DNA of 64,000 nt from Pristiophorus japonicus (Eukaryota): contig NC_091990.1 of the NCBI RefSeq assembly GCF_044704955.1, positions 177,506,001 through 177,570,000 of the forward strand, given 5' to 3'. How positions within the stretch are numbered: the first letter of the stretch is position 1; each line of letters opens with the position of its first letter. The notes below the pieces were generated by a model. The model saw only the letters and a program-made list of their open reading frames with translations. It searched no databases and had not been told where the DNA came from. Position numbers and translations under genes: made by a program. Of the stretch, positions 1 to 37,069 are shown in pieces.

Positions 1-145
1 ATACTTCCTTGTTGCTCAGTATTTTGCTCATCAGTGGTTCTATCTTTTGTCTCATGTCCATCACCAGTTTCTTTTGTGTCCTCCACCTTTGACCCTGCAC
101 TCAAACAAAGGAAAGAACATTCAGCTGCAATATTTTCAATGCTTT
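1..145 (-). CDS. Repeated exon C4', truncated by the window edge: ESIENIAAECSFLCLSAGSKVEDTKETGDGHETKDRTTDEQNTEQQGS...
   Basis: Acceptor tttcttgtctcag|AAAGC; frame open to position 1; the donor lies outside the window. Confidence 0.62.
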
Positions 146-2073
146 CTGAGACAAGAAACCTCAACCCATTCAGACAATCTGAATTTTTGCTGCTGAAGTC
201 CTGCAGTGCTGCTGCACCAGAGGTGAGCAGAAAAACGGACCCTAAATCCACCTGAACAGACAAGCCCAGATCCTGTCCGAATGCCAGGGACAAGTCATCT
301 GCATTAACGGGACAGGCCTCCGGAAACTGCAAGGGTGCAAGAGGGACGCTCGACCTGACATCGGTCCTGAAGTGCTGCCATTTCACTCTGAGGATGGTAG
401 AGGGAGCGCAGGAAGGACCCAACGAACTGAGTAATGTATTTTATTCATCGACGCCCCAGGGGATTCAGGGAAACAGTTTTAAAAAGGCAATCATTCGCCT
501 ATGGGTAAATTAGCTTTAGCTCGCTGTACTCTCCTGCATGTCGCACCTTATGACATTTTGGCATTAGGTTAGATACTTGTCACTCAATCTGCAGAAGTAA
601 TAGATTGATTTTCGAAAACAAAAATATTATTTAAAATACAGAATGGTGAAACTTGTGCAAGACAAAACCATTAACTCTGCATTAACGTTTAAACAGAGAA
701 TCGTCAGTATTTCTGCAAGCCCTTTACTTTACGTTTCAATTAGCGCAAAGATTGCATCACTGAGATTAGTGTAAACTTTTTGTGCAAAGTAATGGAAATA
801 TTACCTCCCCAGACATTAAATTGAAAGGGGGAAGCAAAGAGAGGCAGAAAAATCTAAGTACTCCCAGAGAGACCCAAAGTCAGAGAGCTTGAGCCAATGA
901 GGCAATAAAGTATCCTTACGAAATATAACGAGACATTCGGGACAGAGATATGAACAAAACCGCTGTCAGCTAAATGGAAAGGGACTGTCAGTGATACCCT
1001 CTCCCTGGTAATTGGACTATAGGACGGGTAAAAGATGATTGACATGAGAGATCCACCAGTCCATCGAAATAAAATATAAGAATGGGTGACTGAGAAGTGT
1101 AAGCAGGCATCTAGGGCCGGAGGCTTCCTAGAGGTTGACTAATGCTGGCTAAATAGCCTAACACCTTGGTCAAGTCTTAACCTCTGAAGTGAATCAATGC
1201 TTTTACTAACCTAACACCTCCAACAAGATGACCCTGCAGAAGTGACCACTGTCGCAGGCTGCAGGGATCCACCAATCCGAGACTAACGCTCTGCCTCGCC
1301 ATGGATTCGTCCATCTGTCTGTCTGTCTGGGACTCTGTTCCGGTCGTTTACCTCCACGTAGTTCAGTCTCCACTGTCCCGGGTTTGATGTGTATTATACC
1401 TATCTTAACTGTATGTAGTATCTGATTATGCTTTAAAACTATAACTCTTTAATAAAATATCTTACAAATCCTAAGAGCCTTTGGTGTGTGACCTGTGATC
1501 CTGATCTTACACAGGGATCTTTGAAATATGGGGCTTTCAGCAAATATTTACATTATCCCCTTAGTTTGTATTTCATGGCAAGAATGCATCTGATTGGATA
1601 CGAGATGGTCATAGACTTCTCTCGCTGCCCTGAATTTACCTCCGTCAACTAGCTTCAAATAATATTGGCGAATTTGCACAATGTGGATATTCAACTGCCC
1701 CCGTCTTACTCGCACACGACCTTATTGTGGTACAATCATTGTACAAATACTGTACTTTGATATAAGTGGGGAGCTCAGAAGAAAATATCATGAATTTCTG
1801 ATTTGAGAAAACAGGAGCTTCATCTCATCTGAATATGATGGCGACTACATCTTTCCATCAATAATGTACCGGGGTGTCAGTCGAGATAGATGTTCAAGTC
1901 CTGGAATGGGACTTCAACACACTACCTTCTGACTCAGAGACAAGTTTGCTGAATGATGTAGCTAATTGTTACAGGAATTTTTCAATTCCCAATGTGCCGA
2001 CTTCAATGCATGGACTACAAACAATTCTTTTTGCACTTCAATAGTAGATAAGGATTGTCACTATATTTATTAC

Positions 2074-2241
2074 CTGCAGTATCATTTGGTTTTGGTGTAC
2101 TTCCTTGTCCTTCAGTATTTTGCTCATCAGTGGTTCTATCTTTTGCCTCATGTCCATCACCAGTTTCTTTAGTGTCCTCTACCTTTGACCCTGCACTCAA
2201 ACAATGGAAAGAAAATGCAGCTGCAATATTTTCAATGCTTT
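2074..2241 (-). CDS. Repeated exon C3' (168 nt, phase 1-1): ESIENIAAAFSFHCLSAGSKVEDTKETGDGHEAKDRTTDEQNTEGQGSTPKPNDTA
   Basis: Acceptor attcttgtctcag|AAAGC, donor GCAG|gtaata, open frame. Confidence 0.72.
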
Positions 2242-2636
2242 CTGAGACAAGAATTATTAATTCTCCACACTATCTTGTTGTGGTCCAATTATTGTACAAA
2301 TACTACACTTTGATGTAAATGGGGTTCTCAGAAGAAAATTGCATCAATTTCTGAATATTGGAAAAGAGGAGCTTAATCTCAGCTGAATATGTTGGTGACC
2401 GTGACAATGTACCTTTCCATCAATAATGTACTGGGGTGTCAGTCGAGATATATGCTCAAGACCTGGAATGGGACTTCACCACACTAACTTGTGACTCAAA
2501 AACAAGTTTCCTGAATAATGTAGCTAATTGTTACAGCCATTTTTCAAGTCAAAAAGTGCTGACTTCAATGCATGGCCTACAAGCAATTCTTTTTGCACTT
2601 TCGATAGTAGATAAGGGTTTTCACCATATTTATTAA

Positions 2637-2802
2637 CTTCATCATTCTTTGGTGTTGGAATAGTTCCTTGTGCCACAGTATTTTGAGTGTCAGTGTGTAT
2701 AAGTTTTGCCTTATCTCCATGAACAGTTTCTTTTGCGTCCTCAACCTTTGACTCTGTACTCGAACACAGGAAATAACTCAGCTGCAATATTTTCAATGCT
2801 TT
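2637..2802 (-). pseudogene. Pseudoexon copy of the 168-nt exon (166 nt)
   Basis: Acceptor intact, but a 2-nt deletion after ESIENIAAE shifts the frame, and the donor is mutated to GAAG|ttaata. Confidence 0.7.
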
Positions 2803-3330
2803 CTGAGACAAGAAACCTCAACTCATTCAGACAATCTGAATTTTTGCTCCGAAGTCCTGCAGTGCTGCTGCACCAGAGGGAAAGCAGACAAGCAGACCCT
2901 AAATCCGCCTCACTTTATGAGATTTTGCCATTAGTTTAGATACTTGTCACTCAATCTGCCGCACAGAGTGGTAGAATAAACAAAATACTCCCAGGGAGAC
3001 CCAAAGTCAGATAGCATGGAGCCACTGAGGCAAGAAATATACGAAATATAATGAGACATTCAGCACAGAGATAAGATAGAAACCGCTGTCAGCTAGATGG
3101 GGAGGGACTGTCAGTGATACCCGCTCCCTGGTAATTGGACTATAGGATGGGTAAACGTTGATTGACACCAGGGATCCACAAGTCCATCGAAATAAAGTAT
3201 AAAAATGGGTGACGAGAACTGTAAGCAGGCATCTAGGACCGGAGGCTTCCTCGAGGTGGATTAATACTGGCTAAATAGCCTAACACCTTGGTCAAATCTA
3301 AACCTCTGAGGTGGATCAATGCTTATTACG

Positions 3331-5505
3331 AACATAAAAACAGAAAATAGGTGCAGGAGTAGGCCATTCCGCCCTTCGAGCCTGCACCACCATTCATTAA
3401 GATCATGGCTCATCATTCCCTCAGAACCCCTTTCCTGCTTTCTCTCCATACCCCTTGATCCATTTAGCTGTAAGGGCCATATCTAACACCCTCTTGAATA
3501 TATCCAATGAACTGGCATCAACAACTCTCTGCGGCAGGGAATTCCACAGGTTAACAACTCGGAGTGAAGAAGTTTCTCCTCATCTCAGTCCTAAATGGCC
3601 TACCCTTTATCCTAAGACTGTGTCTCCTGGTTCTGGATTTCACCAACATCAGGAACAATCCACCCGCATCTAATCTGCCCTGTCAGAATCTTGCATGTTT
3701 CTATGAGATCCCCTCTCATCCTTCTAAACTCCAATGTATAAAGGCCCAGTTAATCCAGTCTCTCTTCATATATGTCAATCCGGCCATCCCGGGAATCAGT
3801 CTGGTGAACCTTCGCTGCACTCCCTCAATAGCAAGAACGTCCTTCCTCAGATTAGGAGACCAAAATTGAACACAGTATTCCAGGTGAGGCCTCACCAAGG
3901 CCCTGTACAACTGCAGTAAAACTTCCCTGCTCCTGTACTCAAATCCCCTAGCTATGAAGGCCAACATGCCATTTGCCATCTTTACCGCCTGTTGCACCTG
4001 TATGCCAACTTTCAATGACTGATGTACCATGACACCCAGGTCTCATTGCACCTTCCCTTTTCCTAATCTGCCACCATTCACATAATATTCTGTCTTCGCC
4101 TTTTTACCCCAAAAGTGGATAACCTCACATTTATCCACATTATACTGCATCTGCCATGCATTTGCCCCATCACCTAACCTGTCTAAGTCACCCTGCAGCC
4201 TCTTAGCATCCTCCTCACAGCTCACACCGCCACCCAGTTTAGTGTCATCTGCAAACTTGGAGATATTACACTCAATTCCTTCATCCAAATCATTGATGTA
4301 TATTGTAAAGAGCTGGGATCCCAGCACTGAGCCCTGCAGCACTCAACTAGTCACTGCCTGCCATTCTGAACAGAACCCGTTTATCCCAACTCTCTGCTTC
4401 CTGTCTACCAACCAGTTCTCTACCAAGTCAGTATATTACCCCCAATAACATGTGCTTTGATTTTGCACACCAATCTCTTATGTGGGACCTTGTCCAATGC
4501 CTTTTGAAAGTCCAAATGCACCACATCCACTGGTTATCCCTTGTTCACTCTAATCGTTACATTCTTTAAAAATTCCAGAAGTTACCATCGAAGGTACCTT
4601 TCCTTAAGTTCAGGACCCTAGTCTCTGAATTAACTGTGCCACTCTCCAGCTTAATAAAGAATTCTACCATATTATGGTCACTCTTCCCCAAGGGGCCTCT
4701 CACAACATGATTGCTAATTAGTCCTTTCTCATTACACATCACCCAGTCTAGGATGGCCAGCCCTCTAGTTGGTTCCTCGACATATTGGTCTAGAAAACCA
4801 TCTCTAATACACTCCAGGAAATCCTCCACCACCGCATTGCTATCATTTTGGTTAGCCCAATCAATATGTAGATTAAAGTCGCCCATGATAACTGCTGTAC
4901 CTTTATTGCACGCATCCCTAATTTCTTGTTTGATGCTGTCCCCAACCTCACTACTACTGCTTGGTGGTCTGTACACAAATCCCACTAGCATTTTCTGCCT
5001 TTGGTATTCCGTAGCTCCACCCATACAGATTCCACATCATCCAAGCTAATGTCTTTCCTTACTATTACATTAATTTACTCTTTAACCAGCAATGCCACCC
5101 CACCTCCTTTTACTTTCTGTCTATCCTTCCTAACTGTTGAATGCCCTTGGATGTTGAATTTCCAGCCTTGGTCACCCTGGAGCAATGTCTCCGTGATGCC
5201 AATTATATCAAACCCATTAACTGTTATCTGCGCAGTTAATTCGTCCACCTTATTCCGAATAATCCTCGCATTGAGGCACAGAGCCTTCAGGCTTGTCTTT
5301 TTAAACATACTTTGCCCCTTTAGAATTTTGCTTTTTGCCTTTTTTGCTTTTTGCCTTGGGTTTCTCTGCCCTCCACTTTTACTTTTCTTCTTTCTATCTT
5401 TTGCTTTTGTCCCCATTCTACTTCCCTCTGTCTCCCTGCATAGGTTCCCCTCCCCATGCCATATTAGTTCAACGCCTCCCTAACAGCACTCGCAAACACT
5501 ACCCC
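3331..5505 (-). mobile_element. CR1-type LINE, internally deleted (EN and RT fragments plus 3' UTR)
   Basis: LCLNARIIRNK, IMGDFN, QGSVLG, KFADDTK and LVRPHLEYCVQFWSP motifs in minus-strand ORFs; there is an EN-to-RT jump near 4565. Confidence 0.93.
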
Positions 5506-7045
5506 TCTGACATTATTACAGTTTGCCATTAGGTTAGATACTTGTCACTCACTCTGCCGAAGTGATAGTTTGATTTTTGATCCCGAAAATATTATTTAAA
5601 ACACAGAACAGTGAAACTTGTGCATGACAAAATAATTAATTCGGCATTAATGTTTAAACACAGGATCGTCAGTATTTCCACAGGCCCTTTGTTTCACGCT
5701 TCAATTAACGCAAAGATTGCATCAGAGAGATTCGTGCAAACCTTTTGTTCAAGGTAATAGAAATATTATGTCCTCGGACATTAAATCGATAAGGGGAAGC
5801 ACCAAGCCGTAGAATAAACCAAGTACTCCCAGGGAGACCCAAAGTCAGAGAGCATGAGCCAATGAGACAATAAAGTGTCCTTACGAAATATAACAAAACA
5901 TTCAGCACGGAGATAAGAAAGAAACTGCTGTCAGCTAGATGGGAAGGGACTGTCAGTGATAACCTCTCCCTGGTTTTGGACTATAGGACGGGTAAAAGAT
6001 GATTGACACCAGGGATCCACAAGTCCATCGAAATAAAGTATAAAAATGTGTGACCGAGAAGTGTAAGCAGGCATCTAGGGCCGGAGGCTCCCTCTAGGTG
6101 GACTAATGCTGGCTAAATAGCCTAACACCTTGGTCAAGTCTTAACCTCTGAAGTGAATCATTGCTTTTACTAACCTAACACCTCCAACAGCTCGAAAGAT
6201 GACCCTGCAGAAGTGACCCTTGTCGCAGGCTGCAGGGATCCACCAATCCGAGACTACCGCTCTGCCTCGCCATGGATTCGTCCGTCTGTCTGTCTGTCTG
6301 GGACTCTGTTCCGGTCGTTTACCTCCACATAGTTCAGTCTCAACTGTCCCGGGTTTTATGTGTATTATACCTATCTTAACTGTATGTAGTATCTGATTAT
6401 GCTTTAAAACTGTAACTCTTTAATAAAATATCTTACAAATCCTAAGAGCCTTTGGTGTGTGACCTGTGATCCTAATCTTACACAGGGATCTTTGAAATAT
6501 GGGGCTTTCAGCAAATATTTACATTATCCCCTTAGTTTCTAATTCAAGACATGAATGCATCTGATTGGATACGAGATGGTAGTAGACTTCTCTCGCTGCC
6601 CTGAATTTACCTCCGTCAACTAGCTTCAAATAATATTGACCACAACTTGGATATTCAACTGCCCCCGTCTTACTCGCACACGACCTTATTGTGGTCCAAT
6701 CATTGTACAAATACTGTACTTTGATGTAAGTGGGGTTCTCAGAAGAAAATATCATGAATTTCTGAATTTGAGGAAAGAGGAGCTTCATCTCATCTGAATA
6801 TGATGGCGATTGTAACAATGCATCTTTCCATCAATAATGTACTGGGGTGTCAGTCGAGATAGATGCTCAAGTCCTGGAATGGGACTTCAACACACTACTT
6901 CTGACTCAGCGATAAGCTTGCTGAATGATTAGCTGATTGTTACAGGAATTTTTCAATTCCCAATGTGCCGTCTTCAATGCATGGACTGCAAACAATTCTT
7001 TTTGCACTTTCGATAGTAGATAAAGGATGTCAACATATTTATTAC

Positions 7046-7213
7046 CTTCATCATTCTTTGATGTTGGAATACCTCCTTGTTCCGCAGTATTTTGAGCATC
7101 AGTGTTTTTCTGTTTTGCCTTATTTCCATCCATATTTTTTTTTGTGTCCTCTAACTTCGAATCTGTATTCGAACACAGAAAAGAACTGTCAGCTGCAATA
7201 TTTTTAATGCTTT
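7046..7213 (-). CDS. Repeated exon C2' (168 nt, phase 1-1): ESIKNIAADSSFLCSNTDSKLEDTKKNMDGNKAKQKNTDAQNTAEQGGIPTSKNDE
   Basis: Acceptor tttcttgtctcag|AAAGC, donor GAAG|gtaata, open frame. Confidence 0.72.
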
Positions 7214-7319
7214 CTGAGACAAGAAACCTCAACCCATTCAGACAATCTGAAGTTCTGCAGTACTGCTGCACCAGAGGTGAGCAGAAAAGCGGACCCTAAA
7301 TCTGTCTCACGTTACGACA

Positions 7320-8282
7320 TTTTGCCATTAGGTTAGATACTTGTCACTCACTCTGCCGAAGTGATAGATTGATTTTCGATAACAAAAATATTATTTAAAA
7401 CACAGAACGGTGAAACTTGTGCACGACAAAATCATTAATTCTGCAATAATGTTTAAACACAGGATCGTCAGAATTTTCCGCAAGCCCTTCGCTTTACGCA
7501 TCAATTAACGCAAACATTGCATCAGTGAGATTAGTACAAACCTTTTGTGCAAGATAATAGAAATATTACCTTCGCGGACATTAAAATGATAAGGGGAAGC
7601 ACAGAGCGGTAGAATAAACAAAGTACTCCAAGGGAGACCCAAATTCAGAGAGAATGAGCCAATGAGGCAATAAAGTGTCTTTATGAAATAAAACGAGATG
7701 TTCAGCACAGAGATAAGAAAGAAACCGCATCAGCTAGATGGGAAGGGACTGTCAGTGATACCCTCTCCCTGGTAATTGGACGATAGGACGGGTAAAAGAT
7801 GATTGAAATCAGGGATCCACCAGTCCATCTAAATAAAGTATAAAGATGGGTGACCGAGAAGTGTAAGCAGGCATCTAGGGCCGGAGGTTTCTCGAGGTGG
7901 ACTAATGCTGGCTAAATAGCCGAACACCTTGGTCAAGTCTTAACCTCGGAGGTGGATCAATGCTTCTTACTAACCTAACACCTCCAACAGCTCGAAAGAC
8001 AACCCGGCAGAAGTGACCACTGTCGCAGGCTGCAGGGATCCACCAATCCGAGACAACCGCTCTGCCTCGCCATGCGTTCGTCCGTCTGTCTGGGACTCCG
8101 TTCCGATCGTTTAACTCCGCGTACTTCGCTCTCAACTGTCCCGGGTTGTATGCCTATTATACCTATCTCAACTGTATGTAGTATCTGATTATGCTTTAAC
8201 ACTGTAGCTCTTTAATAAAATACCTTACAGTTCCTAAGACCCTTTGGGTATCTGTATGTGACCTGTGATCCTAATCTTACAC
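7320..8282 (+). mobile_element. Possible solo-LTR-like segment inside the 1.8-kb unit (this copy representative)
   Basis: CCAAT (gagccaatgag), TATA-like gtataaa near 7838, AATAAA near 8215 followed by a GT-rich tract, ending ...TCTTACA. No TSD or 5' TG boundary identified. Confidence 0.35.
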
Positions 8283-8851
8283 GGGAATCTTTGAAGTATG
8301 GGGCTATCAGCAAATATTTACATTAGCCCCTTAGTTTCTATTTCAAGACAAGAATGCATCTGATTGTACGAGATGGTAGTAGAGTTCTCTCGCTGCCCTG
8401 AATTTACCTCCGTCAACTAGCTTCAAATAATATTGCCGAATTTGCACAACTTGGATAGTCAACTGTCCCCGTCTTACTCGCACACGACCTTATTGTGGTC
8501 CAACCATTGTACAAATACTGTACTTTGATGTAAGTGGGGTTCTCAGAAGAAAGTATCATGAATATCTGATTTTGAGGAAAGACGAGCTTCATCTCATCTG
8601 AATATGATGGCCAATGTGACAATGCATCTTGCCATCAATAATGTACTGGGCTGTAAGTCGAGATATATGCTCAAGTGCTGGAATGGGACTTCAACACACT
8701 ACCATCTGACTCAGAGACAAGTTTGCTGAATGATGTAGCTAATTGTTCCAGGAATGTTTCAATTCCCAATGTGCCGACTTCAATGCATGGACTACAAACA
8801 ATTCTTTTTGCACTTTCGATAGTAGATAAGGGTTGCCACCATATTTATTAC

Positions 8852-9019
8852 CTTCATCATGCTTTGATGTTGGAATACTGCCTTGTGCCACAGTATTTTG
8901 AGTGTCATTGTGTACATGGTTTGCCTTATTTCCATCAAAATTTCCCTTTGTGTCCTCCATCTTCGACTCTGTACTCGAACACAGAAAGGAATTGTCAGCC
9001 GCAATATTTTTAACGCTTT
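8852..9019 (-). CDS. Repeated exon C1' (168 nt, phase 1-1): ESVKNIAADNSFLCSSTESKMEDTKGNFDGNKANHVHNDTQNTVAQGSIPTSKHDE
   Basis: Acceptor ccttccctcag|AAAGC, donor GAAG|gtaata; length and frame are conserved across copies. Confidence 0.7.
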
Positions 9020-10687
9020 CTGAGGGAAGGCCCCTCAACCCATTCAGACAATCTGAATTTTTGCTCCGAAGTCCTGCAGTACTGCTGCACCAGAGGTGAT
9101 GAGAAAAGCGGACCCTAAATCCGTCTGAGAATATGACATTTTGCCATTAGGTTAGATACATGTCACTCAATCTGCAGAAGTGATGGATTGATTTTCGACA
9201 ATAAAAAATATTATTTAAAACACAGAACAGTGAAACTTGTGCATGACAAAATCATTAATTCTGCAATAATGTTTAAACACAGGATCGTCAGTATTTTCCA
9301 CAAGCCCTTCACTTTACGCATCAATTAACGAAAAGATTGCATCAGTGAGATTAGTGCAAACCTTTTGTGCAAGATAATAGAAATATTACCTTCGCGGACA
9401 TTAAATTGATAAAGGGAAGCACAGAGCGGTAGAATAAATAAAGTACTCCAAGGGAGACCCAAATTCAGAGAGCATGAGCCAATGAAGCAATAAAGTGTCT
9501 TTACGAAATAAAACGAGACATTCAGCACAGAGATAAGAAAGAAACCGCTATCAGCTAAATGGGAAGGGACTGTCAGTGATACCCTCTCCCTGGTAATTGG
9601 ACTATAGGATGTGTAAAAGATGATTGACACCAGGGATCCAACAGTCCATCGAAATAAAGTATAAAGATGGGTGACCGAGAAGTGTAAGCAGGCATCTAGG
9701 GCCGGAGGTTTCCTCTAGGTGGACTAATGCTGGCTAAATAGCCTAACACCTTGCTCAAATCTTAACCTCTGAAGTGGATCAATGCTTTTACTAACCTAAC
9801 ACCTCCAACAGCTCAGCTCGAAAGACAACCCTGCAGAAGTGACCCCTGTCGCAGGCTGCAGGGATCCACCAATTCGAGACTAGCACTCTGTCTCGCCATG
9901 CGTTCATCCGTCTGTCTATCAGACTGTCTGGGACTTCGTTCCGCTAGTTTAACTCCGTGTAGTTCGCTCTCAACTGTCCAGTGTTGTATGTCTATTATTC
10001 CTATCTTAACTGTATGTAGTATGTGATTAGGCTTTAACACTGTAGCTCTTGAATAAAATACCTTGCAAATCCTAAGACCCTGTGGGTATCTGTATGTGAC
10101 CTGTGATCCTATTCTTGCACAAGGGATCTTTGAAGTATTGGGCTTTCAGCCAATATTTACATTAGCCCCTTAGTTTATATTTCAAGGCAAGAATGCATCT
10201 GATTGGACACGAGATGGTAGTAGGCTTCTCTCGCTGCCCTGAATTTACCTCCATCAACTAGCTTCAAATAATATTGGCGAATTCGTACAACTTGGATATT
10301 GAACTGCCCCCGTCGTACCAACACACTACCTTATTGTGGTCCAATCATTGTACAAATACTGTACTTTGATGTAAGTGGGGTTCTCACAAGAAAATATCAT
10401 GTATTTCTGAATTTGAGAAAAGAGGAGATTCATCGCATCTGAATATGATGCCGACCGTGACAATGCATCTTTCCATCAATAATGTACTGGGCTGCCAGTC
10501 GAGATAGATGTTCAAGTTCTGGAATGGGACTTCAACACACTACCTTCTGACTCAGAGACAAGTTTGCTGAATGATGTAGCTAATTGTTACAGGAAGTTTT
10601 CAATTAATAATAAAGCAGAGCCAGGTTTGTACCTGTGTTAGTTTACAGTATTCAGTCTATCGCGTTATTACATACATAACACACTAT

Positions 10688-11875
10688 AACAGAACTTCCA
10701 TTTTGTTCTTTCCTCTCCTACCCCTTTCCCTGCTCCACTTGCTTAAAAACCTGTTACATTTCTAACTTTTTCCAGTTCTGACAAAAGCTCATCGACCTGA
10801 AACGTTAACTCTGTTTCTATCTCCACAGATGCTGCCATACCTGCTGAGTATTTCCAGCATTTTCTGTTGTTCATTTAGATTTCCAGCGACAGCAGTATTT
10901 TGCTTTTTTATTAACAATAATTACATTGCTAAAAGGGCACTTGCACTATTAATAACCAGATTTAACTTTCTGATATGACTTTAACAGGCAATTAATGCGT
11001 AAATGCAGGAACCTCATGAAATTCATGTGGTAGTTAAGGACAGGCTGCCGTTTATGTGAACCTAACGGCAAATTGTCCAGCAACTTGTGTTGATTTGCAA
11101 TATACGGGGTATCTTGTTACCCACTGAACCTGCTGGACGATTTGCTCATTATGTGTCGTTCACATGCCATTACTTTTTCAGCAAGTTCCAGCTAATTATT
11201 TCAAGCTATCTTTATCTTGGTGCCACGATTTGCAGCCAAAGGTTTTCAGCATCATGTGTGCAGGGATTTGTGTTGTGTATAAAATGCTGAAATTACCTGC
11301 TGTAACCTTCAGTCGTGTAGTTTTAGTACAAACTTTCTCAGTTGTGTCCTGTTTAACTTCAATGATTAGCTCAGCGCCATCGTCCTTGGATACATCAGGA
11401 CACAGGGTAATGTCGCAGGGTATTCTGAAATTCTTTTCAGCAGTACGTTGTAATTCTGGCACCTCAGCAGTGAAGGAGTCATCTTTCGTGCAGGAATGTG
11501 ATATACTTGTGAGGGGAATAGATACTTTATTTGGTCCTGACCAGCTCGCTACTGGAATTTGCCAGTGAAATAGCTTCTTTGTTTCCTGCTCCCCTTTCCT
11601 CTTCAAGGATGTAACAATGTTCACCGTCTCTCGAAGGAACAGAGTAACTTCCCACTTCAGTTGAACTTTCTCATTATGTTTGATTTTATCCGGTTTTGTG
11701 ATATCACTAATTGTAGGAGGATCTACAACAGAAAGCAAAACAATGTGAAATAAACTTTATGTTCCAACTCACTCATGTACATCCTTGTTCAGAGATGATG
11801 TACAAACTGAATAGCAATGTTCCAAAATGTGTATCATTGCAGAGGATTGCGGCATTATGCATCGCCATGGAATCA
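10688..11875. repeat. Segmental duplicate of ~14008-15205 (Penelope end, intron and Ig-like exon)
   Basis: Colinear similarity from ACAGAACTTCCATTTTGTTCT through the exon to TTATGCATCG.CATGG. Confidence 0.92.
11297..11722 (-). CDS. Atypical Ig C-like domain exon B2 (426 nt, phase 1-1)
   Basis: Acceptor ctttctgttgtag|ATCCT, donor GCAG|gtaatt; paralogue of B1 with the same length and an open frame. Confidence 0.8.
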
Positions 11876-14620: not shown

Positions 14621-15046
14621 CTGCTGTAACGTTCAGTACTGCACTTTTAGTACAAATTTTCTCAGGAGCGTCATGTTTAACTTCAATGATTAGCTCTGCG
14701 CCATCATCCTTGGATACATCAGGACACAGGGTAAAGTTGCAGGGTATGCTGAAATTCCCTTCAAAGGTATGTTGTAATTTTGGCACCTCAGCAGTGAAGG
14801 AATTATCTTCCTTGCAGGAACCTGTTTCATTTGTGAGGGGAATAGATAAATTAGTTGTGTCCGACAAGCTCTCTACTGGAACTCGCCAGTGAAATAGCTT
14901 CTTTGTTTCCTGCTCCCCTTTCCTCTTCAAGGATGTAACAATGTTCACCATCTCTCGACGGAGCAGAGTGACTTCCCACTTCAGATGGATTTTCTCATTG
15001 TGTTTGATTTCATCCGGTTTCATGATATCGCTAATTGTAGGAAGAT
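14621..15046 (-). CDS. Atypical Ig C-like domain exon B1 (426 nt, phase 1-1)
   Basis: Acceptor ttttctgttgtag|ATCTT, donor GCAG|gtaatt, 142 open codons. LKWEVT and LCPDVSKDDGAELIIEVKH align by eye with VRCDVT and IQPTVNDDGDKYTCVVRH of the C1 exon. Confidence 0.8.
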
Positions 15047-33260: not shown

Positions 33261-34027
33261 CAATAAATGCTGGTCTTGCCAGCGATGTCACATCCCAGGA
33301 GTGAAATTTTTAAAAATCACATTTTTACACTCCGCCTTTAATGATGTCCATGAGAATGATAAGGAAAATGATTTCTTGAAATGTAAGCAAGCTACATATT
33401 ATAGACTCTACAAATAAAATACCATCCACATCTGCCAAGTGAAGTCAAGGATTCCTGTTTCCAGCTGACAGACCCAACTTTAACAACAACCCATAATCGT
33501 TAATCACCATTTTAACTGACATCTTGTAAGAGCCAAACTTGGTCAATAACTTGCCTTCAATTACAAGAGCTTCAACATTAGCTAACAGTCACTTCTCAGG
33601 GACTTTATCATAATATATAAATTGTGGTCGAAACACAGGATTGGTTAAAGTCTGGAAATTATTACAAAAACAAAAATCAAGCTTAGTGTTAAAACACAAA
33701 TAGTGTATAGGAATACACAAGATAAGAACCATTGCATCCGGTTCCATTCTTATTACAGCCAGTGGTGGGATTCCACCTTACTGGGATGGGAACTTCCACA
33801 TTGCCTCTTTTCCTTCTTGTATTACACTGACATTGACTGTGTATGGAAGCACCAAATTGGAGTCAATTTAGACCATATTAAATTTGGATACACTAGTCTC
33901 TTTGAATTTGGAGAATGAAAAATTCCCCCTTCAGATCTAAAGCCTATATTGACCTGAAGGATGAACGACTTAAGATCTAGATGGAAAAGTGAAAAATATT
34001 GTGTGATACCAATGTCTCATGGCTTAC

Positions 34028-34132
34028 CTGCTTCCGTTTTTGCTACTCCTTGTTCAGCAAATGTCTTTTTTCCATGGCAAGTTGATGCACTTTTTATTAA
34101 TGCTTGACATTCTACATCACGTAGATTGTTGC
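34028..34132 (-). CDS. Short repeated exon A3 (105 nt, phase 1-1): GNNLRDVECQALIKSASTCHGKKTFAEQGVAKTEA
   Basis: Acceptor ttctttctag|GCAAC (12 nt upstream of the site used in A1/A2, which reads ctac here), donor GCAG|gtaagc, open frame. Confidence 0.65.
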
Positions 34133-36976
34133 CTAGAAAGAACGATATGCTTTGATATAGCACCTTTCACAACCACCGGATGTCCCAAAGCATTTTACAG
34201 CCAATGAAGTACTCTTTTCAAGTGTAGCCACTGTTGTAATGTTGAAAACCCGGCAGCCAATTTGCGCACAGCAAGCTCCCACACACAGAAATGTGATAAT
34301 AACCAGATAATCTGTTTAGTGATGTTGGTTGAGGGATAAATGTTGGCCAGGACACTGGAGATAACTCCCTCCCCTGCTCTTCTTCGAAATTGTGCCATAA
34401 TATATTTTACGTCCACCTGAGAGAGCACCTAAGCTTAACATCTCAACTGAAAGACAACTCTGACAATTCTGCACTCTCTCAGTACTGCACTGGAGTGTCA
34501 GTTTAGATTTTTGTGCTTCAGTCTCTGTAGTGAGACTAGAATAGAATGTCAATGTCAAGAGTTCAAGAAATTAAACATTTTATAATTGAATTAAGAATTA
34601 ACCATTACCTTACATCATCGATATATTATTAAAATTGGTATGTCCTGGCATCTTTCTATTCCAAAGACCTTTGTCAACAGTACCTATGAGGTTTGCATTG
34701 TTAATTGTGTCCACATCATTCTTTAATCATTCACTGCCGGCAAGGCCAGCATTTATTGCACAACCCTAATTGCCCTCGAGAAGGTGATGGTGAGCTGCCT
34801 TCTTGAATATACTGAATTACTTTCTGGGTCATTTCAGAGGGCAGTTTAGAGTCAACAATATTGCCCTGGGTCTGGAGTTATATATAGCCCAGACCGGGTA
34901 AGGGTGACAGATTTCCTTCCCTAAAATACATGATTGAACCAGATGCATTTTTACGACAATCCAGTAGTTTCATAGTGATCATTACTAATATTAGCTTTTT
35001 GTTCCAGATTTATTTATTTGAATTTAAATTCCCCAGTTGTCATGGTGTGATTTGAACTCATGTCTCTAAATCCTGCATAATGGATTGAAGCTCGTGGTTT
35101 TATCCTCCAGGTCTTCAGTGAAGCGAATTAATTTCAGCCAAATAGCTTTGGTGGTGTCGCACTTGTATTCTGCTAACTGCTTTTCCAGGTTCAAGCTACA
35201 TATTAAAGACTCTACATATGAAATACCGTCCATATCTGCCAGTGAAGTCAAGGCTTCCCGTTTCCAGCTGACAGACCCAACTTTAACACCGGCCCATAAT
35301 AGTTAATCACCATTTTAACTGATATCTTGTAAGAGCCAATTCAATTAAAATTGTCTCACTTTTTTCACTGCCCAAGTGTAATGAACCAGAAGCTAAGTGC
35401 TGATTGTGAATCTTCAAATACAAAATGACCTGATCAATATTAATAATTACTTCAAAACAATTCAGATATATTTTCTCTGTTTTACTTGTGTTGAATTTGC
35501 AGAATATTAGCTGAAAATAAAGTGTTATTGTTTAAAACAACAAAGTTCGCAGCAGAAACACAAGAGTTGGGTAGATAACAATCAGAGTAATTTCTACAAA
35601 CCAGAAAAGAGGCTTGTGATGAAAGGATTACTAGGACTGCAATGTCACCAATAATTAACATAATGAGGCCAGTTAATGTTCGTCAAAATAATTGTTAGAG
35701 ACAAAAGCTATCCACAAATTGTCCCACACCTTACGTGTAGAAATGTTTCCCAACTTCACTCCTGAAAGGCTTGACTCTAATTTTTAGACTATGTCCCCAC
35801 GATCTAGACTCCCCTACCAGTAGAAATAGTTTTACTATTAAAGTTTATACATCATTTTTAAAAATAGTTCACAGATCTATCCTATTGGACTCCAGGTATA
35901 ATTCTAATAAATCTACGCTGCACACCATCAAAGTTCAATGTATAATTTCTAATGTGTGGTGCCCAGAACTGCTCACAGTACTCCAGGGCTCTGTATAGCT
36001 GTGGCATAACTTCTAACCCTTTGTATTCTAGTCTTCCCGATATAAAGGCCAGCATTCCATTACACTTTTTGATTATTTTCTGTCCCTGTCCATGACATTT
36101 TAATGATCTATGTACATGGACACCCAAGTCACTTTGGACCTCCACGGTTTATGGCTTTTCAGTATTTAGAAAGTAATCTGATCTATCCTTTTTAGGTCCA
36201 AAGTGGATGACTACACATTTGCCTACATTGAAATCCATTTGCCACATTTTTGCAAATTCGCTTAATCTATTAATAACTCTTTATAATTTTATGCTGCTAT
36301 CTACAGTGCTTTTAATGTCACCTATCTTTGTGTCATCAGCAAACTTGTATATGTGGCTTTCTATCCCATCATCTAAGTCGTTAATAAATATGGTGAATAG
36401 TTGACGTCGTATCCTGTACATTATCCCTACTCATATCCTGTCCATTATCCCTACTCTCTGTCTCATGCCGCTTACCAATTTCCTAACCAGGTCAATAATT
36501 TGCATTCAATTCCAAGAGCTTCAACTTTAGCGAACAGTCGCTTCTAAGGGACTGTATCATAATATATAAATTTTGGCCGAAATAAGGGATTGGTCAAAAC
36601 GGGATATTATTACAAAAACAAAAATTCGAGATTAGAATTGAAACACAAATAGTGTATAGGAACACACAAAATAAGAACCATTGCATCCGGTTCCATTCTT
36701 ATTGCAGCCAGTGGTGGGATTCCACCTCACTGAGATGGGAACTTCCAGGTTGCCTCTTTTTCTTCTTGTATTACATTGACATTGACTGTGAGTGGAAGCA
36801 CCAAATTGGAGTCAATTTAGACCATATTAAATTTGGATACACTAGTCTCTTTGAATTTGGAGAATGAAAACTTCCCCCTTCGGATCTAAAGCCTACGTTG
36901 ACCTGAAGGACGGACGACTGAAGATCTCGAATGAAAAGTGAAAAGTATTGTGTGATACCAATGGCTAATGGCTTAC

Positions 36977-37069
36977 CTGCTTCCGTTTCTGGTGCTCCTT
37001 GTTCAGCAAATGACTTTTTTCCATGGCCAGGTAGTTCACTCTTCATTAATAGTTGACTTTCTTCACCAC
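36977..37069 (-). CDS. Short repeated exon A2 (93 nt, phase 1-1): GGEESQLLMKSELPGHGKKSFAEQGAPETEA
   Basis: Acceptor caatctag|GTGGT, donor GCAG|gtaagc; overlaps track ORF 36771..37046 in the same frame. Confidence 0.65.

Follow-up and report, generated by a model that had tools for sequence, protein, structure and literature searches.

Predicted cassette exons that have diverged further than their introns in a tandem array at a B7-like locus of the sawshark Pristiophorus japonicus

The window analyzed here is a 64,000-nt stretch of the genome of Pristiophorus japonicus (assembly GCF_044704955.1, contig NC_091990.1, positions 177,506,001-177,570,000 of the forward strand). Coordinates are window positions. 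The putative 168-nt exons and the other exons of the gene all lie on the minus strand, and the features are listed in the order in which that strand is read.

61953..62495, minus strand: ORF containing a V-set Ig exon (Pfam V-set, 7e-8)
54753..55055, minus strand: ORF containing a C1-set Ig exon (Pfam C1-set, E = 1.5e-12)
52578..52679, minus strand: transmembrane (TM) exon of 102 nt, AAIIISVLVLICIALGFGIYIW then RNHQK, phase 1/1, upstream of the array and the Ig-like exons
11297..11722, minus strand: upstream 426-nt exon of 141 codons, phase 1/1, read from sequence
9020..10605, minus strand: first intron-part copy of the repeat (unit positions 88-1638), preceding exon A, located in the window by blastn with the unit
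8852..9019, minus strand: unit A, 168 nt, exon-like, with AG/GT flanks and an open frame in phase 1/1 (55 full codons, SVKNIAAD...KHDE)
7046..7213, minus strand: unit B, 168 nt, exon-like, with AG/GT flanks and an open frame
3338..5505, minus strand: degenerate 2.2-kb LINE with endonuclease and reverse transcriptase (Pfam Exo_endo_phos_2 and RVT_1), containing stops
2637..2802, minus strand: unit C, a decayed fifth copy of 166 nt, with a 2-nt deletion near the 5' end and the donor GT changed to TT
2074..2241, minus strand: unit D, 168 nt, exon-like, its acceptor flank reduced to about 12 nt
249..538, minus strand: insertion of 290 nt in the intron that precedes exon E, present once in the window
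1..145, minus strand: unit E, exon-like, truncated by the window edge, with 47 complete codons in view

The gene has the layout of the B7 family, namely V-set and C1-set Ig ectodomain exons, recovered by domain searches run exon by exon, and one TM exon, read from the sequence. The top PDB matches of the V exon were CD276 (B7-H3; 2.4e-14) and NCR3LG1 (B7-H6; 2.3e-12). The 426-nt exon at 11722-11297, which we take to be Ig-like, has a paralogue at 15046-14621. The last G of the 426-nt exon and the AA with which every 168-nt exon begins together make a GAA codon, 168 nt is a multiple of three, and the phase 1/1 of the array exons is also that of the 426-nt exon and the TM exon. Because the array follows the V-set, C1-set, TM and two Ig-like exons, all in phase 1, its predicted product would belong to the cytoplasmic tail. 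This placement would not apply if the array belonged to another gene further downstream in this orientation, whose product would then be something other than a cytoplasmic tail, and the 37 kb of transposon-rich DNA between the TM exon (52.6 kb) and the Ig-like exons (at 15 and 11.7 kb) would fit such an arrangement. Nevertheless, strand and phase 1 are common to all of the exons, and no leader-type exon was noticed when the sequence between 11297 and 9019 was read by eye, so that we consider a separate gene highly improbable.

Four segments with the form AG, 168 nt, GT occur on the minus strand, at 9019-8852, 7213-7046, 2241-2074 and, as a partial, at 145. The borders ctcag/AAAGC and G/gtaata are found in the copies at 9019, 7213 and 2241, while the copy at 145 has the acceptor and continues past the window edge. 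The sequence thus confirms the coordinates, borders and exact length given in the preliminary description of this locus. A single frame in phase 1/1 is open across all four live copies, with no indel between them. When the exon peptides were searched against the 64-kb window with tblastn, five copies and no further match were found. The fifth, at 2802-2637, had been overlooked previously; it has stops in the exon frame, and the sole frameshifted copy is also the sole copy with a destroyed donor.

Unequal crossing-over multiplied a 1.8-kb unit of exon plus intron to give the array, and homology to the repeat begins at 10605 (blastn, unit against window). A tandem repeat of this length had been reported before and is indeed present, but it is interrupted in several places. 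The LINE at 5505-3338 marks a jump in the register of the repeat from unit position 1547 back to 874, the unit running from 2802 to 2241 measures 561 bp only (compared to the 1.8-kb repeat), and the 290-nt insertion precedes exon E. Exon D retains little of its acceptor flank because a deletion cut the preceding intron to 395 nt. The array is now partly eroding, as one exon is dead and another, the exon-bearing unit end of a sixth copy, was probably lost at the LINE insertion.

The live copies have kept their frame and length while their sequences changed. Between the copies at 9019 and 2241, 29 of the 55 full codons differ with no stop and no indel, in close agreement with an earlier hand count of about 29 of 56 residues. 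No indel was found among ~76 exon substitutions, for which the introns (0.081 indel events per substitution) predict ~6 (P ~0.002); the absence of frame-breaking indels alone has P ~0.01, and the stop-free state of all four live copies has P ~0.046. The earlier claim of frame preservation is borne out by these figures. As a control for chance, plain intron of the array units contains shared stretches of 42-48 codons that are open and free of gaps, compared to 60 codons in the exon region and 52 on the antisense strand there.

These observations bear on whether the segments are exons at all. They might be pseudo-exons that are dying or not expressed, either the relic of a tail or a sequence that never coded, drifting neutrally with frames that are open by chance and recency. 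The open stretches found in plain intron, the death of one copy and the probable deletion of another fit this explanation, as does the possibility that the gene ends earlier: read-through of the donor at 11297 reaches a stop after 33 codons (ORF 11196-11738), and an AATAAA lies at 10912-10907. A query of RNA runs with positions 6900-11800 (two putative 168-nt exons and the 426-nt exon, 85% intron) listed none, which points the same way. A word search with the 141-codon Ig-like exon for transcript fragments came back blank. Even so, zero indels against ~6 expected, and a joint chance on the order of 1e-4 for having neither stop nor indel, argue against drift, and we regard pseudo-exons as unlikely.

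The module itself has no detectable homologue in the protein sets that were searched, which also favors the pseudo-exon reading. Three exon peptides had no match in Pfam, and a profile search of 1.84 billion representative proteins yielded no accepted relative; the marginal hit P0001 (E = 7e-4) was rejected, as the match spans 18 residues of the GSKVEEIKD type and lies in a repeat protein that is unrelated. A word search with the four-copy alignment was also blank, although its length limit of 30-96 aa makes this a weak result, and neither the profile nor the word searches of proteins returned a predicted protein carrying the module. Per 55 residues, the peptides contain 6-9 hydrophobic residues, 8-11 D+E and 4-7 G+P together, with S+T at 20-23%. 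The predicted 56-residue module is polar, acidic and probably disordered. Disorder had been suspected before, and AlphaFold2 on the four-copy alignment agrees (pLDDT 51-62, no secondary structure), although this support is weak because the alignment is shallow. A mucin-like PTS repeat was considered and rejected based on the S+T and G+P content and the position of the array downstream of the TM exon.

Within the repeat unit, divergence is highest in the exon. Live exon pairs differ by 15.5-29% and their introns by 8-11% (p from 4e-3 to 3e-6), while exons D and E differ by 6.9%. Measured against its own intron, the exon differs by 15.5% vs 8.1% for A-B (p = 0.004), and by 25.5% vs 10.8% (p = 3e-6) and 20.7% vs 9.4% (p = 9e-5) in the other two contrasts. 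The resulting ratio of 1.9-2.4, which rises to ~4 against the 400 nt downstream, derives from two independent contrasts, A vs B and A/B vs D/E. Across 84-nt bins the divergence changes abruptly where the splice sites lie, from 31% to 5% in one instance and from 4% to 21% in another. Whole introns are 89-92% identical with 8-14 gap events per pair, close to the roughly 90% similarity with indels that had been estimated by eye. Purines make up 61-64% of the sense strand in every exon and 49-50% in introns. In the dead copy C the exon divergence (15%) shows no excess over that of the flanks (12-18%). A mutational cause of the exon excess was rejected on the grounds of this dead copy and of transition/transversion ratios that are equal in exons and introns. 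Under neutral drift the exon should diverge as much as its flanks, which is true of the dead copy, in contrast to the two- to four-fold excess bounded by splice sites in the live ones; exon divergence no greater than that of the flanks, which would have told against the preliminary description, is thus not what the live copies have.

It is quite possible, if somewhat short of an even chance, that the exons are real and the contrast is a product of history. The exon lineages would be old (~15-29% apart) and the introns recently homogenised through gene conversion or unequal crossing-over, in tracts that ended at the diverged exons by chance or were halted by them. The similarity of the introns is a mosaic, with E and C1 closest in the 5' half and A and B in the 3' half (few copies), and the topology switches near unit position 1000. 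The flanks of the dead copy lie 12-18% away from those of every other copy, roughly the exon distance among A, B and C, which suggests ~15% as the unhomogenised neutral level. The equal transition/transversion ratios are in line with this history as well. What it accommodates less easily is that, in each of two independent contrasts, both borders fall on splice sites. Tracts ending by chance would miss the splice sites unless selection removes converted exons, which leads again to selection for diversity.

The preliminary description had proposed positive selection, but in its usual sense this found no support. Nei-Gojobori dN/dS is 0.74-1.22 between live copies and 0.49 for D-E, not significantly above 1 as diversifying selection would have it. 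The differences are even over the three codon positions (9/7/10, 15/18/16 and 13/17/12), and within the exons synonymous and non-synonymous divergence is raised to a like degree. Coding divergence exceeds the intron level in the live copies, for which the intron is a neutral standard that may be homogenised itself. The residues listed as retained (ES..NIAA, F.C.S..SK.EDTK, DG, QNT..QG and P) are invariant as claimed, but their number is no more than chance provides: 14 codons are unchanged vs 13.4 expected from shuffles (SD 1.9, P = 0.47). Unchanged codons do not cluster beyond chance, and variable and conserved codons do not segregate in the manner of rate heterogeneity. A dN/dS near 1, even codon positions and conserved sites without clustering are what pseudo-exons would give, and a synonymous rise equal to the non-synonymous one also suits old exon lineages beside homogenised introns. 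In summary, the exons have held to their frame and length, and their amino-acid sequence has been able to change almost freely.

Taking this together, we believe that each 168-nt segment is a symmetrical cassette exon located at the 3' end of a B7-H6/B7-H3-like sawshark gene, a prediction from sequence to which we give a probability of about 0.55. They would be spliced and translated, following the TM exon and two Ig-like exons, and each would add a 56-residue module to the cytoplasmic tail. The exon/intron contrast would then arise because the introns have been homogenised between units by recombination or gene conversion, whereas the exons would have been either held distinct or pushed apart by selection acting on the product. 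It is intriguing to consider that the tail exons of an NK-ligand-type B7 gene are kept different, with homogenised introns, by an intracellular form of the diversifying selection known from the MHC, although we see this as a long shot. The driver could be pathogen factors that grab the tail to remove the ligand from the cell surface, and exon number or choice would give variable tails.

If the segments are spliced, the locus is a compact natural case of exon-limited rapid divergence within one gene, for which the introns and a dead sister exon are built-in neutral controls. It would also represent rapid evolution in the tail of a B7/NK-ligand-type protein, a place where this is not expected, and an orphan 56-residue module added to the post-membrane region of a shark B7-H6-like gene. 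If they are unspliced, the array is an ordinary decaying repeat whose sole oddity is a mosaic history of conversion.

Several known systems resemble parts of this arrangement. With NCR3LG1 (B7-H6) and CD276 (B7-H3) the gene shares V-set and C1-set exons for the ectodomain and one TM exon, but in contrast to their solved ectodomains it has a long post-TM region with Ig-like exons and the repeat module, a combination for which we found no paper. The PEVK exons of titin are a tandem exon-duplication array coding for unstructured repeats. Here, too, short exons of symmetrical phase have been multiplied with their introns, the predicted product is polar and unstructured, and units could be gained and lost by unequal crossing-over; unlike PEVK-type arrays, the sawshark module has no detectable relative and comes after a transmembrane segment. 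In MHC class I and II genes, introns are homogenised by recombination while the peptide-binding exons are kept diverse. The sawshark array is similar in that its divergence peak is confined to the exon, the flanking introns are alike and the gene belongs to an immune-region family, but MHC exons have dN > dS at defined contact codons of a folded extracellular domain, whereas the array has dN/dS ~1 and no clustering of sites. Snake-venom PLA2 genes, like other toxin genes, evolve in an accelerated manner. Their introns have changed less than their coding exons, KA and KS are about the same, and the three codon positions collect substitutions at comparable rates (PMC7285919). The sawshark array shares all of these features, with exon divergence above that of introns, dN/dS ~1 and even codon positions; it differs in that PLA2 genes are paralogous genes for secreted toxins with known products, while the comparison made here is among repeated putative exons inside one gene, in a module that presumably lies in a cytoplasmic, unstructured tail.

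Direct reading of positions 1-9600 and a pattern scan place the four 168-nt exon-like segments of the preliminary description (A, B, D and E) on the minus strand, each directly preceded by ctcag and followed by gtaata after exactly 168 nt wherever the end is visible. The scan also found a dead fifth copy (C) that had been overlooked.

Exon-like segments of the array
9019-8852, minus strand: segment A (direct reading and pattern scan)
7213-7046, minus strand: segment B (direct reading and pattern scan)
2802-2637, minus strand: dead copy C (pattern scan)
2241-2074, minus strand: segment D (direct reading and pattern scan)
Starting at 145, minus strand: segment E, cut by the window edge (direct reading and pattern scan)

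A frame check of A, B, D and E found only one common open frame, with phase 1/1 (the first two bases complete a codon, and the last base opens the next). The encoded peptides, SVKNIAAD...KHDE and variants, had no further match within the 64-kb window. Copy C lacks 2 nt close to its 5' end, is interrupted by stops in the exon frame, and carries TT in place of the GT donor; because the remainder is still open beyond the frameshift, its death looks recent, and it is an internal neutral control.

Comparison of one unit (the ~1.8-kb exon-plus-intron repeat) with the window by blastn showed that repeat homology begins at 10605, upstream of exon A, and the A-to-B distance is 1806 nt. Downstream of B, the intron reaches unit position 1547 at 5506, a LINE follows, and the repeat restarts past it at unit position 874. 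Given this backward register jump, the end of an exon-bearing unit was probably lost there, and parts of two units, one exon among them, are probably missing at the LINE site. The C-to-D unit measures only 561 bp, shortened by a deletion that fused intron position ~371 to the last ~12 nt before the D acceptor.

Insertions within the array
5505-3338, minus strand: degenerate LINE with many stops, in the gene's orientation (Pfam endonuclease-RT and RVT_1 domains)
538-249, minus strand: 290-nt insertion in the intron preceding E, with no second copy in the window

The key claim made earlier, that the exon is more diverged than its flanking intron, was borne out in five pairs (p from 0.004 to 2e-10), among which the independent contrasts are only two (A versus B, and A/B versus D/E).

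Divergence of exons and neighboring intron
A and B: exon 15.5%, own upstream intron 8.1%, p = 0.004
A and E: exon 25.5%, own upstream intron 10.8%, p = 3e-6
B and E: exon 20.7%, own upstream intron 9.4%, p = 9e-5
A and D: exon 29.2%, 395 nt downstream 7.5%, p = 2e-10
B and D: exon 25.0%, 395 nt downstream 6.3%, p = 3e-9

In 100-column windows the exon was the most diverged part of the unit in every comparison, and in 84-nt bins the splice sites mark abrupt steps in divergence (31% to 5%, 25% to 10%, 4% to 21%, and 11% to 23%). In dead copy C, the exon is about as diverged as its flanks (15-22% versus 12-18%), and the ts/tv ratio is equal in exons (0.87) and introns (0.98), so a mutational property of the sequence does not account for the exon excess. 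The sharp exon-limited divergence, together with the dead copy and the LINE-associated loss, confirms and extends the original observation.

Frame preservation was also upheld. Compared in full, the introns of the units are 8.1-10.8% divergent, with 0.081 indel events for every substitution; over the ~76 substitutions of the exon tree, ~6 indels would be expected and 0 were observed (P ~0.002, or ~0.01 for the absence of frame-breaking indels alone). All four copies are stop-free (P ~0.046 by tree simulation, 0.2-0.4 pairwise), and the sole frameshifted copy, C, is the same one that lost its donor. Among the stretches that are open and free of gaps in all three of units A, B, and E, the exon region is the longest, at 60 codons; shared stretches of 48, 46, and 42 codons are open by chance in plain intron of these units, which tempers the frame-retention result. 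Antisense to the exon (8852-9056 region, plus strand), 52 codons are open in the same units, without AG/GT flanks, probably because the sense strand is rich in purines (61-64% purine in exons versus 49-50% in introns). Conservation of the splice dinucleotides was left out as evidence, because the flanks are ~90% identical anyway.

The classical positive selection and motif retention proposed with these features were not borne out. Nei-Gojobori dN/dS of exon pairs is 0.74-1.22 (0.49 for D-E), synonymous divergence is raised too (0.19-0.48), and differences are spread evenly across first, second, and third positions of the codon (9/7/10, 15/18/16, and 13/17/12). The residues described as retained are truly invariant, but the count of unchanged codons, 14, is that of chance (13.4 expected from shuffling, P = 0.47).

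The array probably lies at the 3' end of a B7-family (B7-H6/B7-H3-like) gene.

Exons upstream of the array
Near 62.4 kb, minus strand: V-set exon, best solved relatives CD276/B7-H3 (2.4e-14) and NCR3LG1/B7-H6 (2.3e-12)
Near 55 kb, minus strand: C1-set exon (Pfam 1.5e-12)
52679-52578, minus strand: transmembrane exon, phase 1/1, AAIIISVLVLICIALGFGIYIW then RNHQK (sequence reading)
15046-14621, minus strand: paralogue of the 426-nt exon (sequence comparison)
11722-11297, minus strand: 426-nt putative Ig-like exon, phase 1/1 (sequence reading)

The last G of the 426-nt exon and the opening AA of each 168-nt exon form GAA. If the upstream exons and the array make one transcript, the 56-residue modules would be part of its cytoplasmic tail. 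The stretch between the V-set exon and the C1-set exon contains a 19-nt minisatellite (~100 copies, 58002-59946) and a 44-nt repeat array (~8-11 copies, 55885-56347), and N runs occur near 48.3-49.5 kb. A second tandem triplication (33600-40700, unit ~2.95-3.0 kb, 88-92% identical) lies between the transmembrane and Ig-like exons, and six-frame reading discerned no exon in it.

The two Ig-like exons (11297-11722 and 14621-15046) differ at 56/420 sites (13.3%, flanks ~9%), with dN/dS of 1.18 and codon-position differences of 21/18/17. As they behave like the 168-nt exons, fast, position-blind change is a property of the whole 3' part of the gene, and it would thus reach the predicted folded part of the tail, the putative Ig-like exons.

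The module product would be polar and acidic: of its 55 full codons, 8-11 encode D or E, 11-12 S or T, and only 6-9 hydrophobic residues. AlphaFold2 predicted no secondary structure (pLDDT 51-62), a weak result from a four-row alignment. The spliced model was searched one exon at a time. Among 1.84 billion representative proteins the module had no relative except one marginal, unrelated repeat protein, although a gene model clustered under a repeat-less representative would escape this search. Word searches with the four-copy module alignment and with the 141-codon Ig-like exon gave no match, and neither search type found a public gene model containing the module. These blanks, together with the two observations that follow, speak against real exons and for unexpressed, decaying pseudo-exons, a reading that we consider rather unlikely. 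The search for RNA runs matching 6900-11800 listed none, a weak negative covering indexed runs only; it counts because an assembly with the three exons of this interval would hold ~12-15% of the words, above the listing threshold of one-twentieth. Read through the donor at 11297, the Ig-like exon continues for 33 codons (11296-11196) to a stop (ORF 11196-11738, minus strand), and an AATAAA lies ~385 nt downstream of that donor (10912-10907, minus strand), together a possible alternative gene end that would leave out the array.

Pure decay fails to explain the splice-site-bounded contrast. Intron similarity is mosaic: in the 5' half it is units E and C1 that are almost identical, in the 3' half units A and B. 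The units have therefore exchanged sequence. The most economical account has introns being homogenised between units and exons spared, which could reflect selection against converted exons or exons being driven apart; either way, the contrast points to selection on the mature RNA or protein. On this sequence evidence, we put the probability that the 168-nt segments are real, fast-evolving tail cassette exons at slightly over one half (about 0.55).

The array is a case of known kinds, tandem exon duplication and exons that diverge faster than introns. In the accelerated evolution of snake-venom PLA2 genes, introns are more conserved than exons, KA is about equal to KS, and codon positions change alike (PMC7285919). 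The 168-nt exons match these genes in the combination of greater exon than intron divergence, KA ~ KS, and even codon positions.
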